Made by a program: the position numbers and the translations under genes | Assembly: GCA_943704425.1 (NCBI GenBank) | Contig: CALSCP010001980.1 | Span: 12,306 to 76,305 of the forward strand | DNA from: Ministeria vibrans ATCC 50519 | Taxonomy: Eukaryota; Protista; Filasterea | Direction of reading: 5' to 3' | Length of the DNA: 64,000 nucleotides | Part shown: in pieces, positions 35,167-44,700 of the stretch | Position numbering within the stretch: the stretch's first letter is position 1 | How the letters are laid out: each line of letters begins with the position of its first letter | Notes under the pieces: generated by a model | What the model was told of the DNA's origin: nothing | Seen by the model: the letters and a program-made list of their open reading frames with translations, nothing else | Database searches by the model: none

Positions 35167-37115
35167 TCAATCACTTTCTTCTTCGTCTTCTTCCTCCTCC
35201 TCCTCCTCCTCCTCCTCCTCGGGTCGTGCTGCGTCTTCCTCTTCCACTGTTGGGTCCGCACACTCCTCCATTTCGCGCGCACATTCCGTTGCAATCTCGT
35301 CGCTTAAGGTTGAAGGCGCATACTCTCCGTCGCGTGTCTTGATGCCCCACCCCACATACAAATTTGCATACTCTCGCGTCCCTCCCACCGCATACGAATG
35401 CGCTCCCTTCCATCGGTTTGACGAGACCACCACCGGCGCAAACTCCTCTCCGTTTGCCGCTCCACCCACCAGAGACCCCAGTACACTGCTGCGACGCACT
35501 GTCCACGCACTCGTCCGCCCTCCATCCAGCGGCTCGTCGTCGCTCGCCGCCGTCAGCAGCATGGGCCCTTCCTCAGGCTCCTCCTCTTCCTCCTCCTCGC
35601 CGCCCATCACCTCGCCCTCGTCTTCGTCCTCCTCCTCTTCGCCCATGTCCTCCTGCTCGTCCCGCGTGCTCACCCAGCTTGTGCGCCCTTGCTCCAACAC
35701 ATGCTGCACAATGTGCGTCCAGTTCTCCATGCGTGTGTCCGCCAGCTCGTCACCCGTCAATGGCTCCCACTCGTCGTCCTCGAGCCAGTATGTGCGTGCA
35801 GCGTCGTCCTCCTCTTCGTCCTCCTCGTCGAACATACACAGTCCGAGAGGCGCTAGGTGAGTTCCCGCCGAAATGCGCGCAATCTGCGCACGCAGCAGCT
35901 GCGCCTCGCGTCCCGGAAAGGGCGGATGTGCGGGCACGGGAGCATTGAGACGGCCCGTCAACAGACGCGTAATCTGACGTGCGCTGTGGATCTGCTGCGG
36001 CGTGACCATAGGTAGACGTGTCCATGCAGCCGACGGTGTACTCGTCACAAAGTACACGTACTTGTTCACGCCCACACCAAACTCTTCGCTCTCCGGCAAA
36101 ATCGGTTCGCGGTACTTGGATTTAGGCAGAGGTCGCCGCGTGTGGTTCGACGGCGCTGGTGCCCCCTCGAGATCGCCATCGATATTCACTTCGTTGTCGG
36201 GGTCGACTGGCTGTGAGGCCACGTGCAAATCGGGCTCCTGATCGAGTTCACTGTCATCCGGCTGCCATGCATTGCTCATTTCACACTCGGCCACGTAGTA
36301 GTTGCTCTCACGTCCAAAAATCTTCCCCCAAAAGCGCACCCTGTCCACCGGCTCGCGCTGGACAAGGAGACGCAAAGCAAGGAGCACTCGAATGCTCTCA
36401 CTTACGCCCAGTCCCACGCCACACGACTGAAAGCGTTGTGCTTGCAGCACCAAGTTGGGCATGTCAACTTGACTGAGCGAAGCCGGTGCTGCAGCTCCAC
36501 TCGCGTCGTGTAATTCGGAGTCATCACCGAGCAGCGGTCGTCCGAGTTGCGCTTGGGCGACACGGTGCGATGTGGTCACCGCGTCCATTTTAGGGCCCGG
36601 GGCGCTATTGTGGGCATCCTCCTGTGCCACACGCAGGCGTTTCACGTCGAGTGACACCTGTTCGAGTGTGTCTACAGCGTTGTCCGGTCGCTCAAGCAAC
36701 AAGCGATCCACAACATCGGTCAAATGATCGAATCTACAGGATAAAGCACGTTGCTGTTGCGTCAGAACTGTACCGTTGCTTGTCCCACTAAGGGGGTGGG
36801 GGTGCCAGTCTCGGCGACCAGCGTAAAACTCATTTTTCTTTTCATCCACTATTTTGGTTGCTAGGGGGAATGGTTGTCATGTGAAGAGAAAAAAAGTATG
36901 ACACGAGCGGCTGAACCGACGAGAAAGAGTGTACTGTGTAGGCAAGAATATTGCAGGGGGGCTTGGCATCTGCCATGCGACGTCGACAGGTGGTGGTAAA
37001 ATGCAGAGCGACATTTTAATAATTCTTTTTTGTTTCCCCTTAGTCCTTACAAGTTGAGTCCCGTCTCTGAAGACACCTGCAAACAATACGCTTGGGCACT
37101 CTCTAATGTTGCCAT
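35167..37115 (-). CDS. RSPH4A: Radial spoke head protein RSPH4/6; exon 1 37051-37115, intron 36734-37050
   Basis: MATLESAQAYCLQVSSETGLNL|FDHL..., RFWGKIFG...NYYVAE, GVGVNKYVYFV, FPGREAQLLRAQIARISAGT, SNRWKGA, ANLYVGWGIK. Confidence 0.95.
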
Positions 37116-37190: not shown

Positions 37191-40100
37191 ATGTTTCTGC
37201 TCTCATTCTCACTCCCACAACTGTCAATTGAGCGCGCTGAGCGTGTCACTGTTGCCACGGATGGCACAGCATTGATTCAGGTGGCGCCAGATAGCGAGTC
37301 TGCGACGCTCGTGGCGCTGCTGGAAGCGGTGCGCAACGCCTGGGTTGATGGGGTGGACACCGTCGAAGAAGCGACGCAGTGGCTCGACCAGGGCGCCGCA
37401 CGGGTACGAATGCACGCCCCCCGCACACTCTCCTTCGTCCTGCTCGCGTCCCCGTATGCTGCTAACCGCGCCGCCGCTGTTGTCTTTTTCTCAGGTGGTG
37501 ATGAAATCGACGGCCCATCGCGCCGCACTTCTCGAGGCTATCCCACACGATCGCCTTGCCGTGGCAGGCGCCACCGGCGATCCCCAGCTTCCGGCGGCCG
37601 TGGCTCAGATTGTGGCAGACAAGGAGGCGGCGCTGGCTTTGAAGGGGTCCTCCGAGACGGCGTTGATTGTGGTGCGCAATGGGTCCACGGCAGATGTTGC
37701 GGCGCTCGACAAGGCGGGCATTGTGTGCTGCCTTGACGTGAGCGGCGAGGACGAGGATGACAGCAAGATGCTGAGTGCGACGTATGCGTCGGTGTTGCAG
37801 AGCGACCGTGCCGATGGACTGTGGACGACAATGGTGGTGGACGAGAGAGGCGTTGCATTGGGTCTGGTCTACTCGAACGAAGCGTCGCTGTGTGAGTCGT
37901 TGCGCACCCGTCGCGGTGTGTTTCACTCGCGCAAGCGTGGATTGTGGCGCAAAGGCGAGACGAGTGGCGCCATTCAAGAGTTGCTGGGTGTGTCGGTCGA
38001 CTGCGATCGCGACTGCCTTGTGTTTCGCGTGCGTCAGCACGGCAGTGGTTTCTGCCACCTGAACACGCGCACGTGCATGGGCGACGACCGAGGACTGGGA
38101 TACCTGGAGCGCACTCTGCGTCAACGGCGTGAGAATGCTCCCTCTGGCTCCTACACGGCGCGCCTGTTTAGCTCGCCGGCGATGCTCGGCGCCAAGTTGC
38201 GCGAGGAGGCGGACGAGCTGGCGCGCGCCGAGACGCCGCGTGAAGTCGCTCTCGAGGCGGCCGACGTGCTTTTCTTTGCACTGACTCGCTGTGTTGCCGA
38301 AGGTGTTACACTTGATGACGTGGAGGCGGTGCTGGACCGACGCAGTCGCAAGCTCACGCGCCGACCCGGCAACACCAAGAAGCAGTTTGAGGCGAAGCCC
38401 AAGGTGGCTGTTGTGGACGCCGAGAAGGCCACAGAGGAAACGCCAGAGCAGGCCGAGAAGGCCACACCAGAGCAGAGTGCGACGGAAATTTTGCGACCGT
38501 ACGTTCTTGAGGATTTGAGCGAGGGCGAGCGAGCGCGGGTGTGTCAGCGACCGGCGCAGGACATGGCGTCAGCGGAGGTGGTGCGCGAGCGCACTCGGGC
38601 GATTGTGGAGCGAGTGCGGACGGAGGGGGACGAGGCGGTGATCGAGCTGACACACAAGTTTGATGGGTGTGACATGCGCGAGGAAGGGACACCCGTTGTG
38701 GACACGGCAACGGTGCTGGCGGCCGCCATGGCCAAGCTGAGTGGGTCGGTGCGCAGTGCCATTGACCTTGCCTTTGGCAACATTGAGCGTTTTCATCGGG
38801 CGCAAGTCGACAAGGACGCGACGACGCTGTGTGTCGAGACGGCCGCGGGTGTGACGTGCAGTCGACACACGCGTGCACTGCACACCGTCGGTCTGTACGT
38901 GCCCGGCGGCTCGGCGGTGCTTCCGTCGACGGCCATGATGCTGGGCATTCCGGCCATGGTCGCCGGATGTACGCGCATAGTCCTTGCGTCGCCCCCCGCC
39001 CGCGACGGCTCGCTTTGTCCCGAGATTGTCTACATTGCCAGCAAGGTTGGATGCAAGTCTATTGTGCGCGCCGGTGGTGCCCAGGCCATTGCAGGTACCC
39101 AATAATTGTGTGGTCAGCATAGTATGAATTGGTATTGAACATTGTCTCTCTGTGCACCAGCTATGGCATATGGCACGGCGACTGTGCCCAAGTGCGACAA
39201 GATCTGTGGACCGGGCAATCAGTATGTGACGGCGGCCAAGATGTTGGTGCAGACGGATACACGCGCCATGTGCAGCATCGACATGCCCGCTGGTCCTTCT
39301 GAGGTGTGTGTCCCCTCTCGCGTGCCACTCACTCACTTTTCACTTTCTTTGTCTTCTTGTTTATCTTTCTATCTCTTTGTTTTTTCTTCCTCTTCCTCCT
39401 CCTCATCCTCCTCTCTCTTCTTCTTTTAGCTGCTAGTGATTGCCGATCGATCTGCTCGTCCTGACTTTGTTGCCAGTGATCTGTTGTCGCAGGCGGAGCA
39501 TGGCCCCGACAGCCAAGTGGTGCTGGTCACCGTGTCTCTCACGCCCGATCAGGTACACAGTTGGCACGCATACACTCAGACAGTCAGATAATGCTTATTC
39601 TTTGAATGTACTGTAGATCAAAGCAATTCAGCAGGAGACACAGGCACAGCTGGAGCGCCTTCCTCGACGCGACATTGCTCGTGTCGCCCTGTCCAAGTCC
39701 TTCCTTATGCAGACCACATCTCTCTCTGATGGTACCCTTCCCACTCACTCTATTTAGACTCACTTTGCCTCACTTACACTCACATTCTCTATCATTTTGT
39801 TTATTATCTCTTTTTTGTTTCTTCTCTTCTCTCTCTCTATCACTTTGTTTCTTTCTCCCTCCTCTCTCTCTCTCACTTTGTTTCTTTCTCCCTCCTCTCT
39901 CTATCTCACTTTGTTTCTTTCTCCCTCCTCTCTCTCTCACACACTTTGTTTCTTTCTCCCTCCTCTCTCTCTCTCTCTCTGGTGATAGCTTTGGCGTTTG
40001 CCAATGAGTATGCGCCCGAGCATCTGATTGTCAATGCCGACTACGGTCCCGACGATGATCAACTCATGTCTGGCGTGCGCAATGCCGGTTCTGTCTTCCT

Positions 40101-40426
40101 TGGTCCCTTCTCCGCCGAAAGGTACCTCATGCCCACTCGAACGCACACACGCTCACACAACTCATACACATTACAGCTGCGGTGACTACGCGTCGGGTAC
40201 CAATCACACACTGCCGACGTACGGGTATGCGCGCCAGTACAGCGGCGTGTCCACATCGACTTTTCAGAAGCATATTACGTCGCAGCATTTGACCGCCGAC
40301 GGACTGCTGACCATTGGCGACGCAGTGGAGACGCTGGCGGCCGTCGAGGGTCTCGATGCCCACCGCCTGGCCGTTGTCGTGCGCCAAACCTTTATCAAGC
40401 ATGACCGGGCTATGCTCGTCGACTGA
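37191..40426 (+). CDS. HIS4: Histidine biosynthesis trifunctional protein (PR-AMP cyclohydrolase / PR-ATP pyrophosphatase / histidinol dehydrogenase)
   Basis: [23 protein letters not shown] (HisI); SYTARLF...[10 protein letters not shown] (HisE); [50 protein letters not shown] (HisD). Confidence 0.97.
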
Positions 40427-40603: not shown

Positions 40604-41162
40604 TCAAGACGGCTTGCCATCGAGTCGCTCGCGCAATACGCGAATTTCCTCTCGTAGACTGTCCAATTCTTCGTCGCGCCGTCGCAACGTTTCAACCAGC
40701 TCGTTTTTGTTCAGGTCAGTATACATCGCACTGGCAAACAACTGCGAAAAGCCATACGTGTCGCGCGACGCCTTCTTGCGCCTGGAGGGCCTGCCCGACG
40801 GTGACGCGACCGACACGGTGGCGGCATCGGTGTTTGTTGGTGCCGGTGTCGAGGCTGCGGCGCCTACAGCGTGCGCCTCGTCATTGTTTGCGTGACTCGG
40901 TGGTGCGCTGTCAGCAGCAACAACTGGCCCCTGCTCGGCCGTGACGTCTCCCTCAGCCAGCAGCTTGTCAAAGTCGGAAAATGACATCTCCAAGACAACA
41001 CCGTCGACCTCGATGCTGCCCTCGTTGTCGGAATCGTCGTTGTCGCTCACCGCCGGCGTCGGCTCGAGCGTGCGCTCCGCCGATGCCACCAGATAGGCAT
41101 TGTGATTCGCCGGCGCCTGAGGTCGCATCAGAGGGAACCCCCGCTTCCCCCGCTTCTTCCTG

Positions 41163-41226
<64 letters not shown>

Positions 41227-41563
41227 ACACACGCAACACAAGACACACGACACAAAGAAGGGGCACGGAAGGCACCGGGTGAGCAGATAGGCCAAGGGCG
41301 CAGTGATCGGCGAAGCGACCCAATTCGCATCGTTTCAGTTTGCTGTCTCACCTGAATGGCGCGCGCGCGGGCTCTGGCTCGGCGTCCTCCGCCAGTCTGT
41401 CTTCGTACGCCTTGCGCTCCTCCCACGTCATGTCGCTGTACGCCTTGGCTGGCGTTGCCACAGACGATTTCGATCCCGTTCGCGCTCGTTTTCTTCTTCT
41501 GCCGCCTTTCGAAGCGCTCTCGGGCGCCCCGCTTGGCATCGCCTCGTCCTTTGTATTGTTCAT
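40604..41563 (-). CDS. HEXIM: HEXIM-family P-TEFb inhibitor homologue (intron 41160-41351)
   Basis: Basic patch GRRRKRAR; KAYSDMTWEERKAYED resembles HEXIM1 KPYYKLTWEEKKKFDE; PQAPANHNAYL resembles PVAPYNTTQFL; acidic tract; C-terminal coiled coil DLNKNELVE...LREEIRVLRE resembles NMSKQELIK...MEDENNRLR. Confidence 0.75.
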
Positions 41564-41742: not shown

Positions 41743-44700
41743 TCACTGTACAACGAGTTCTTGATCTTCCAAGAAGCGATACTCAAAGGTGAACTCGGCC
41801 TTCTTGCGCTGACACCAGCCCTTGTCATAGTCAAAGTAGACGTAGGTGCCCTGCTCGTAGTCGTCTGTGATGGTTGAGGGCTCTTCGTGCCGCTGGAACC
41901 ACGTCAGGTACTTCTTGTGGAAGCGCCATGACTTGTTCTTGAGTTCGCGTGCCGCCAAATACTGCTGGTAGGTGCCTGAGCGACATCATTGGGAGGTGGG
42001 GTGTGAGTGCGCGTTGTTGCATTTTTGTTGTGCAACAAATTTTTTTTATACATTTATTGTGTGCATTGTACCTTGTTGGTAGTAGAAGATAAAAAAGAGT
42101 GTGTCAACGTCCATCTTCTCAAAGACAGCAACGTCACGGAAGACGGGCTGGGAGACTTGAGGATAGTAGGCGGGCGTGAAGGCAGGCGTGGCGGGCGTGT
42201 AGGTGTCAAGCCTGAACGGAGAGGGATTAGATGTTAATTGTGATGCACACGAGAACTATGGTGTGCTAACCATTGCGAGTTGACTTCGGGCATCAAATTC
42301 ATGCTGGTTTCGAGCATTGCCATTGCCTCAGCCATGTCTAAAACATGAAAATGAATATATAAAAGAAATCGGCTTGATGCGGTACCGTCTGAGAGAGGCG
42401 GGCCTGTCTGAGGCGACGTGTGAGGCAGTGGGGACGCATCGGCTGTAGGAGGAAGAGACGCTGCCACGAGAGCAGCGGCAGTAGAAGTGGATGGGGCGGG
42501 CGCAGCAGTAGGCGATGCGGCGACCGGTACAGGGGTAGACGCAGCGGAGGGGGTGTTAGTGTTGATGGTAGGCGACGCAGCAATGGGGACGGTGGGAGTG
42601 GCAGTGGAGGAAGGACTGGACGCACTCTTGCTAGAGACAATGGGTGGGAAGGCCGACGGTGTTGCGGCAGGAGTGGTCGGCTGCGACGCCGCTGCTTGCT
42701 GCTGCGAGGCATTGGCCGCGGCAAGGACGGCTGCGGCGGTAGGAGCGGGTGTGCCTGCAATAGCAGGCGACTGAGGCTGAGACCAGGCACTCGCAGCTGC
42801 AGCGTAAGCCGGCTTGGCACGCTCAGGCTCCTTGGGCGACATCACCTTCAGCGTCGTCGATGCACCCTTCTTGTTGCTACTCGCATTCTTCCCGGTGCTG
42901 CCGCTGCCGCTGTTGTTGTTGTTGCCTGCGGTGCTGCTGTTGGCCGCTGGTTGTTGCTGCTGCGGCTGTTGCGGTTGTTGTTGTGCCTTGCTTGACGCCG
43001 AGTCTATCAATGACTTGGGCGAACTCTTGCCGCTACCGGCAACCACCGACGCAACTGTAGTGGCTGCGGCTACAGCTGTCTTCTTTGAATCCTTCTTCTT
43101 ACCACCGCCGCCAGCGGATGCAGAGGCAGCTACCACAGCCGCTGCTGCCGCAGCGGCTGTCGCAGCAGCCGCTGCTGCTTCTTCTTCCGCAGCAACAGCC
43201 GCAGCGGCAGCCGCTGCCGCAGCCGCTGCCGCCTTCTTGTCCTTTTTGTTCTTTCGCCCAATATCATCATCCTTCTTCTTGGGTGCGGCAGCAGCAGCGG
43301 CAGCCGTAGCAGCAGCGGCAGCCGTAGCAGCAGCAGCAGCAGCCACTTCGGCAGCGGCCGCGGCAGCGGCCGCAACCTCCTCCTTGGTCTTGGTCGACGA
43401 GGCGGTAGCTGTGTCGCTCGTAGCTGTATCACTGGTGTGACTGGTTTTGTCGTCGTGGTGGTGATGGTGGTGGTGAAGGTCGTCAAGGTCGTCGACGCCG
43501 TCGCCATCTTCACCAAGAAGTCCTTCGTAAATGAACTCCTCGCTCATGTCCTGGTCAAACGACGGGTCGTTGTTGTTCTCAATGTAGTACATGATGTCGT
43601 CATGTCGCTCGCTGATGCTGTCCACGTCAATCAAGTCATTTGTAAGAGCACGCAACACATGCTCCAGCTTGCTCGTGTGCCATTTGTGCCGTTCAATCTT
43701 CTGATCGCATGCGCGAATCTTGGACTGATCCGACGACGATTTTTTCTTGCGCTGACTCAGTCCCTCCACTTCCGCCTCCGCCTCGTCAATCTACATCACG
43801 TATTAAAAATAATAAGCATGCCTTTGTTTTTGTTTTTCTTCTTTTTGCAACACGCAACGCACCTGGATGGAGAGGGCATCGATGCAGCTCGTGATCCACG
43901 ACATCTCTTCTTCCTTCTTCTGCTCTTCGGGGTCCACCTTTTTCGCAGCCTTCTCTAAGCCCTCTTTGGAGTACGCCTTGGTTTTCGTTTCCCTCTCAAT
44001 GGCCCGAAACCGTTCCATTTGCTACACAGGCGTCGTATGAGACGAGTGAATAGAACGCATGAAACAAAACCCCTTACCGTCTCGATGAGCTTTCTGTTCT
44101 CCATCAGACCACTCTTGTCCTTGATTTCACTGCAAAGAGAAGACAGAGCGGTGGTCAATGGAGCGTGTGGTCGGGTGCGGGCCGGTCACAAGGGGGCCCA
44201 ACGCGACGGACGACTCACCTGCTTGTGAGCCACTGTTTGATTTGGTCGCGCAGCCGCTGCAGCTTTTTGATTTCCTTCTTCAGCTCCCCCTCATGCTTCT
44301 CCTTCTGGTGGGCGTTGGTGGCAGACGCAACCCGTTCCCAAATTGCCTACAGCAGCCATGGGGGGTCAGCAGGGTGTGCACAGGGGCGCCCATCGTAAGT
44401 TGTAAGCTGACACTTCACACAGAAAAGAGCCTTTTTTTTTTCACATTGAAGAAACGCAGTTCATTGCAACGACAGCGACCCTCGCTCGCACCAGGGGGGA
44501 AATACAAGAACACGCACAAGTGCATCACACAGTGGGGTGGGCTGAACGACGCCTTGGACAGGCAAAGCGAGCGAAAAGAGCGAAAGAAAAAAATCAACAG
44601 ACGAAAGTGACTCGAAGAGTCACAAAACGACAGCAAGACAGAGGGAAGGAAGCGTGAGGGGGGACAGCAGCACAAATAGAACCCCGCAGAGAAGAAGATG

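Follow-up and report, generated by a model that had tools for sequence, protein, structure and literature searches.

The minus strand at positions 40604-41563 of the window, by which we mean the whole 64,000-nucleotide stretch of DNA that was analysed, carries a two-exon, single-copy gene whose predicted product of ~255 residues is in all likelihood a relative of the HEXIM proteins. The kinship is suggested by a series of colinear motifs together with the result of a language-model search; none of the similarities found with the exons taken one by one was significant. The initial annotation of this region had proposed a HEXIM homologue with a rewritten PYNT motif. A HEXIM-family relative does appear very probable, but the rewriting of PYNT proved to be already typical of proteins from outside animals. 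Published HEXIM-like proteins of pre-animal lineages already show changes at key residues, and the gene described here adds a further example.

Two minus-strand open reading frames lie at the locus, one at 41563-41348 (71 aa) and one at 41323-40604 (239 aa). The first begins at position 41563 with the first ATG past an upstream stop. Joining 41563-41352 to 41159-40604 had been said to bring a set of elements into the order found in HEXIM proteins, an arrangement that no single ORF would contain. Both statements held. The join is an in-frame GT-AG splice, and all of the strings quoted in support of it (GRRRKRAR, AYSDMTWEERKAYED, (R)KKRGKR across the junction, PQAPANHNAYL, an acidic tract and a C-terminal helix) are found in the translations, while the translation of neither ORF includes the whole arrangement. 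The predicted donor (CATTCAG/GTGAGA) falls at 41352/41351 and the predicted acceptor (GTGAGCAG/G) at 41160/41159. The junction codon, AG/G, encodes Arg, and the reading frame is kept because the exons of 212 and 556 nt add up to 768 nt; unspliced, exon 1 stops at a TGA that overlaps the donor. Much of the intron is a (TG)n microsatellite (about 41165-41222). The GC3 of the exons matches that of the neighbouring radial-spoke, HIS4 and CNOT3 genes (0.64-0.76), and the GC content of the intergenic flanks (179 bp and 177 bp) is 0.33 and 0.40. The gene occurs once in the assembly, and we regard it as a real two-exon gene with a splice predicted from the DNA. A tandem acceptor (GAG/CAG) was also observed at the end of the intron, at 41160-41164 on the minus strand; use of the AG located 3 nt upstream would likewise be in frame and would add one Ser.

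Three blocks are conserved among HEXIM proteins: WKPYxx[LM][ST]WEE[KR] (block A), AP-x-N-T-x-x-[FY]-L (block B), which corresponds to the 202-PYNTTQFLM-210 segment of the human protein, and F-S-E-T-Y...[ST]-K-Q-E-L-[IV] followed by a coiled coil (block C) (PMC11482795). Patterns for the blocks were written from the HEXIM rows that Chivu et al. give in their supplement (PMC11482795) and scanned in the six-frame translation of the window. The pattern for block A, [KR]-x-Y-x-x-[LM]-[ST]-W-[EQA]-[EQ]-[KR], had a sole match in the six-frame window, KAYSDMTWEER in exon 1, and is expected to match by chance 0.07 times per six-frame genome. Strict patterns that follow the published rows for blocks B and C had no match in the six-frame window because His replaces the S/T equivalent to Thr205 and Asn replaces the S/T that precedes Lys. 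When the patterns were relaxed, APANHNAYL was the only match in the window for block B (AP.N...[FY][LIM]) and FSQLFASAMYTDLNKNELV (FSQLF...NKNELV) was the one match for block C. The three blocks, jointly and in this order, would be expected ~1e-11 times, a figure that includes patterns for B and C relaxed after the strict forms had failed.

As listed in Table 1, the elements of the predicted product follow one another in the order basic patch, KAYSDMTWEERK, second basic patch, APANHNAYL, acidic tract, FSQLF helix and C-terminal coiled coil. The acidic tract follows block B and reaches net charges of -5 and -6 in 15-residue windows over exon-2 residues 31-55. Modelling of exon 2 by AlphaFold2 from the single sequence gave a mostly disordered chain (mean pLDDT 57) with two helices, a short one on FSQLFASAM (residues 137-145) and a longer one of 30 residues (residues 151-180, pLDDT 85-94). 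The best heptad register of the latter has hydrophobic residues at 7 of 11 a/d positions. The C-terminal domain of HEXIM1 consists of a short helix and then a coiled coil, and the two helices in the exon-2 model resemble that plan. The coiled coil of human HEXIM1 has two segments, whereas one short segment of ~30 residues is predicted here.

Table 1. Coordinates (window positions) of the predicted HEXIM-like gene, its elements and its neighbours.
Feature	Position	Strand	Remarks
Exon 1	41352..41563	-	212 nt = 70 codons + 2 nt; ATG at 41563; GC3 0.71
Exon 2	40604..41159	-	556 nt = 1 nt + 184 codons + stop 40606-40604; GC3 0.70
Intron	41160..41351	-	192 nt, GT-AG; no codon-position GC bias
Basic patch 1, GGRRRKRAR	41480..41506	-	candidate RNA-binding / nuclear-localisation region; 13 residues upstream of block A
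Block A, KAYSDMTWEERKAYED	41399..41446	-	counterpart of WKPYxxLTWEEKK; regex match
Basic patch 2, (R)KKRGKR	41141..41159	-	straddles splice junction
Block B, APANHNAYL	41090..41116	-	counterpart of 201-APYNTTQFL-209; relaxed regex match
Acidic tract, SDNDDSDNEGSIEVD and onward	40943..41050	-	disordered in AlphaFold2 model
Basic patch 3, RPSRRKKASR	40763..40792	-	window net charge +5
Block C, FSQLFASAMYTDLNKNELV	40694..40750	-	counterpart of FSETY...SKQELI; relaxed regex match
C-terminal helix / short coiled coil	40619..40708	-	exon-2 residues 151-180; AlphaFold2
Trifunctional HIS4	37345..40426	+	convergent with the HEXIM-like gene; PRA-CH 84.5, PRA-PH 65.4, Histidinol_dh 168 and 88 bits
CNOT3-type gene, last exon	41743..41958	-	NOT2_3_5_C 84.6 bits; ends 179 bp upstream of the HEXIM-like ATG
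Radial spoke head 4/6-type gene	35167-36849	-	uninterrupted 560-codon ORF, 439 bits

Sequence searches were run exon by exon, each exon on its own. In a language-model feature search with exon 2 alone, the top three matches were HEXIM clusters (0.83, 0.83 and 0.81), and HEXIM accounted for 9 of the 10 best family-bearing matches. Since the best Atlas score, 0.83, lies below the tool's 0.9 line, the result is used here as a lead only; the same Atlas search with exon 1 gave no match. The Pfam HEXIM profile (PF15313, 142 positions, gathering score 29 bits) had been put forward in the initial annotation as a check on the family assignment. Run on each exon separately with E values up to 10, the Pfam search gave no match to HEXIM, and PF15313 found nothing in the six-frame translation of the whole 29.7-Mb assembly. 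This blank is a weak negative because the intron splits the domain at about position 30, and full-length choanoflagellate HEXIM orthologues themselves reach only 31 and 41 bits on the profile, so that half-domains cannot pass. Nothing was found with exon 2 in a word-index protein search, with either exon by phmmer against the PDB, or with single exons in a scan of JGI metagenomes, and Foldseek comparison of the exon-2 AlphaFold2 model to the PDB returned noise only. The exact protein is also absent from the supplement of Chivu et al. (PMC11482795). When exon 2 was compared by phmmer to 1.84 billion representative proteins, the one match was P0001 (E 1.6e-4), a repeat protein lacking a HEXIM domain that aligned in low-complexity sequence and was rejected as a HEXIM relative. 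The library thus contains no copy of the gene, nor one of the exon-2 ORF. Taken singly, then, the exons matched nothing significantly, which places their similarity to HEXIM below database-wide significance.

Animal HEXIM1 and HEXIM2 (PF15313) act as 7SK-dependent brakes on P-TEFb, a transcription kinase, and the predicted protein has its elements in the order seen in them. These are the basic region, xKxYxx[LM]TWEE[KR], AP-x-N-x-x-x-aromatic-L, the acidic region, the predicted F-S-x-x-aromatic helix and [SN]K[QN]EL[IV] entering the predicted C-terminal coiled coil. The differences lie in the blocks themselves and in their spacing. Of the residues of human HEXIM1, Pro202 and Asn204 are retained, while Tyr203 is replaced by Ala, Thr205 by His, Phe208 by Tyr and Tyr271 by Phe. 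PYNT reads PANH, and the canonical PYNT plus Phe208, the CDK9-binding peptide in HEXIM, is absent, with P-A-N-H-N-A-Y-L in its place. WKPY reads AKAY, both the Trp and the Pro being Ala. The basic patch directly adjoins block A in the animal rows but stands 13 residues away from it here.

Proteins of this kind from outside animals provide a closer standard. Chivu et al. described HEXIM orthologues in unicellular holozoans and a patchy distribution of HEXIM-like proteins in other eukaryotes (PMC11482795). The holozoan orthologues come from the choanoflagellates Microstomoeca and Barroeca, the ichthyosporeans Sphaerothecum and Creolimax and possibly Capsaspora; HEXIM-like proteins were also reported from cryptophytes, glaucophytes, Rigifila, Spironema and Malawimonas, their orthology to animal HEXIM being left open by the authors (PMC11482795). 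Thr205, Phe208 or Tyr271 is missing in many of the non-animal sequences, in which PYNT appears as PKNT, PRNT, PKLT or PRLT (PMC11482795). Thus block B is APKNTTQFL in Sphaerothecum and APRNTT in cryptophytes, a glaucophyte and Spironema, and Microstomoeca and Barroeca have APKLT and APRLT along with FEEAF instead of FSETY (PMC11482795). Because the published non-animal rows already deviate in this way (PMC11482795), PANH is one more variant and not a unique one.

The predicted protein resembles the unicellular holozoan HEXIMs, whose own Pfam scores are marginal, in its non-animal origin, an altered PYNT and long disordered acidic or low-complexity spacers. With the choanoflagellate proteins it shares F-x-x-x-F in place of FSETY, the residue at Tyr271 being Phe here too. 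It differs from the holozoan HEXIMs in that they retain WKPY, and a His in place of Thr205 does not occur among the published rows that were compared (PMC11482795). The scattered HEXIM-like proteins are of similar size (about 220-360 aa) and likewise have a basic run, a TWEE[KR] block, basic residues ahead of P-x-AP-x-N, an acidic stretch and a single short coiled coil at the C-terminus (compare ...ELVQELREEN... in a HEXIM-like row with ...ELVETLRRRDEE... here). Unlike the present protein, these rows mostly have N-T-T after the proline, as in PRNTT.

A 7SK-like RNA had been suggested as the partner of the protein in the initial annotation. Searches with two Rfam models, which scored 19-22 of the several hundred candidates from the first look, yielded none. 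The 7SK model (RF00100) had no match among the candidates scored, and Arthropod_7SK (RF01052), under the same limited candidate scoring, gave a single match of 15 bits at G000:C2169:6916-7173. This was rejected as a chance match: it lacks the whole 5' hairpin, and bacterial controls reached similar scores. The U6 snRNA model had only one match in the assembly (G000:C648:2679-2741, 63 nt, 57 bits), and from one copy no Pol III upstream element could be derived for detecting similar RNAs. In the U6 match the ACAGAGA box and AGAUUAGC are separated by ~28 additional nucleotides, and a run of N begins directly after the match.

The accompanying search for protein partners was successful in part, as Bin3/MePCE-like and LARP7-like genes were found but no gene for CDK9 or cyclin T/K was identified in the assembly. 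A Bin3/MePCE domain on contig C2292 scored 36 and 27 bits. Two genes of the La-motif/RRM/xRRM type are present in the assembly, one on C692 (64 bits) and one on C71 (26 bits). The former, with an RRM_3 score of 64 bits and an RGG tail, is probably a genuine La gene. The latter, on a contig of 3160 bp, is LARP7-like, with a La-motif tail, RRM1, a weak xRRM and a long acidic/basic tail; it is cut by the contig end inside a (GA)n run. In fission yeast the Bin3/MePCE and LARP7 families act on telomerase RNA and U6 as well (PMC8917221, PMC8881624, PMC10484740), so the existence of a 7SK RNA does not follow from finding them. Matches to a PITALRE DNA pattern were examined as CDK9 candidates and rejected, as they are not kinases. 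Exon-wise HMM search of the assembly found neither NELF-B nor Spt4. Because Spt4 is universal in eukaryotes, such blanks show that exon-wise searching is insensitive in this intron-rich genome and do not show that genes are absent.

Across the dimer of human HEXIM1, the PYNT site, the basic region and the acidic region mask each other. When 7SK binds to the basic region, PYNT is unmasked and binds CDK9, and the coiled coil binds cyclin T (PMC12901311). We expect the protein described here to be a divergent member of the HEXIM/HEXIM-like family and, by analogy with HEXIM1, probably a nuclear, dimeric RNA-binding adaptor. Inhibition of a kinase may be weak, differently wired or absent in it, because human HEXIM1 depends for CDK9 inhibition on Tyr203, Thr205 and Tyr271, the counterparts of which are substituted here. 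The family plan appears to be kept, with a basic region, a TWEE linker block, AP-x-N, an acidic region, a short F-x-x-x-F helix and a putative dimerising coiled coil. As in HEXIM1 (PMC12901311), the basic and acidic regions may mask each other until RNA binds, whereupon the helix and the coiled coil would dock on a cyclin T/K-CDK9 kinase. We propose the parts of this scheme with different degrees of assurance. Binding to a CDK9-cyclin pair is quite possible, though we advance it tentatively. Gating by a 7SK-like RNA is unlikely. The fuller arrangement, in which an unrecognised 7SK-type small RNA, held by LARP7-like and Bin3/MePCE-like proteins, gates the HEXIM-like protein, seems to us less likely again.

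It is possible, if somewhat doubtful, that the protein is a true HEXIM relative and yet not an inhibitor of P-TEFb, that is, a dimeric RNA/protein adaptor which never had the CDK9-blocking activity or has lost it and which works with no 7SK-type RNA. The replacements at Tyr203, Thr205 and Tyr271 are consistent with such a protein, PYNT being the CDK9-binding site in human HEXIM1 (PMC12901311), as is the loss of key residues from many non-animal sequences and the origin of cyclin T, which Chivu et al. placed near choanoflagellates and animals (PMC11482795). The failure of both Rfam models to yield 7SK under limited candidate scoring and a coiled coil of only about 30 residues point in the same direction. 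However, the retention of Pro202, Asn204, an aromatic residue at 208 and the basic-acidic pair suggests that the same interface is under constraint. The assembly also contains Bin3/MePCE-like and LARP7-like genes, and 7SK is notoriously hard to detect by sequence.

If the resemblance were due to chance, which we consider improbable, the product would be an unrelated nuclear protein, disordered over most of its length, that has charged patches and ends in a coiled coil. Every exon-wise database search was negative, coiled coils and charged low-complexity stretches occur commonly, and a third of shuffled proteins reach Atlas scores of 0.8 or more, but if chance were at work the top language-model match would have to have fallen on the one family that the motifs had predicted. 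The three colinear blocks fit the published rows, and block A by itself is expected only 0.07 times per six-frame genome. The failure of the strict patterns for B and C, the Ala residues at both the Trp and the Pro of WKPY and the separation of the basic patch from block A do weigh against the family assignment. An error in the gene model, in which the ORFs are not spliced as proposed (with exon 2 starting, for example, from an internal Met) or one of them is non-coding, is most improbable. The splice rests on DNA sequence, the intron is mostly (TG)n and lacks a clear pyrimidine tract, and an in-frame Met stands in exon 2 immediately ahead of the AP-x-N block. On the other hand, the splice has a strong donor and joins the exons in exact phase, both exons show a GC3 of 0.70-0.71 versus AT-rich flanks, and microsatellite-filled introns recur in the assembly; block A lies in exon 1 and the other two blocks follow in exon 2, as the order of the family would have it.

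HEXIM and 7SK set the level of active P-TEFb in the cell and hence the pausing time of RNA polymerase II, and a connection has been drawn between such control and the rise of gene regulation in animals. Should the HEXIM relative described here be gated by a 7SK-type RNA, an RNA-controlled brake on P-TEFb would predate animals, and the compact genome would be a tractable place in which to find the ancestral RNA. The gene is one more data point for the existence outside animals of the HEXIM scaffold, with its TWEE block, the Pro and Asn of PYNT, the basic-acidic pair and the terminal coiled coil, and it follows the published pattern in which the residues that inhibit in humans vary outside animals. 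Its main value is as a candidate for testing whether a non-animal HEXIM-like protein binds CDK9-cyclin, and with which RNA.

The host had been described in the initial annotation as an apparently non-animal, HIS4-containing flagellate, and the contents of the window agree with this, as trifunctional HIS4, radial-spoke and DRC7 genes were all found. The genome is not that of an animal, as marked by the trifunctional HIS4; animals are not known to have histidine biosynthesis. From the genes for a radial spoke head protein and DRC7 it follows that the organism builds a flagellum. A search of a public collection with the radial-spoke protein gave no self or near-self match, and the best matches (from sponges, molluscs, Salpingoeca and other choanoflagellate transcriptomes) were 37-46% identical, so the lineage is poorly sampled. 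Judged from these matches, the genome seems roughly equidistant from animals and choanoflagellates, and proteins of the organism are missing from the public collections that were searched. The end of HIS4 lies 178 bp from the stop of the HEXIM-like gene. Within HIS4, the gap between ORFs at 39106-40027, an apparent intron, contains CT-rich tandem repeats that translate as repeated units.
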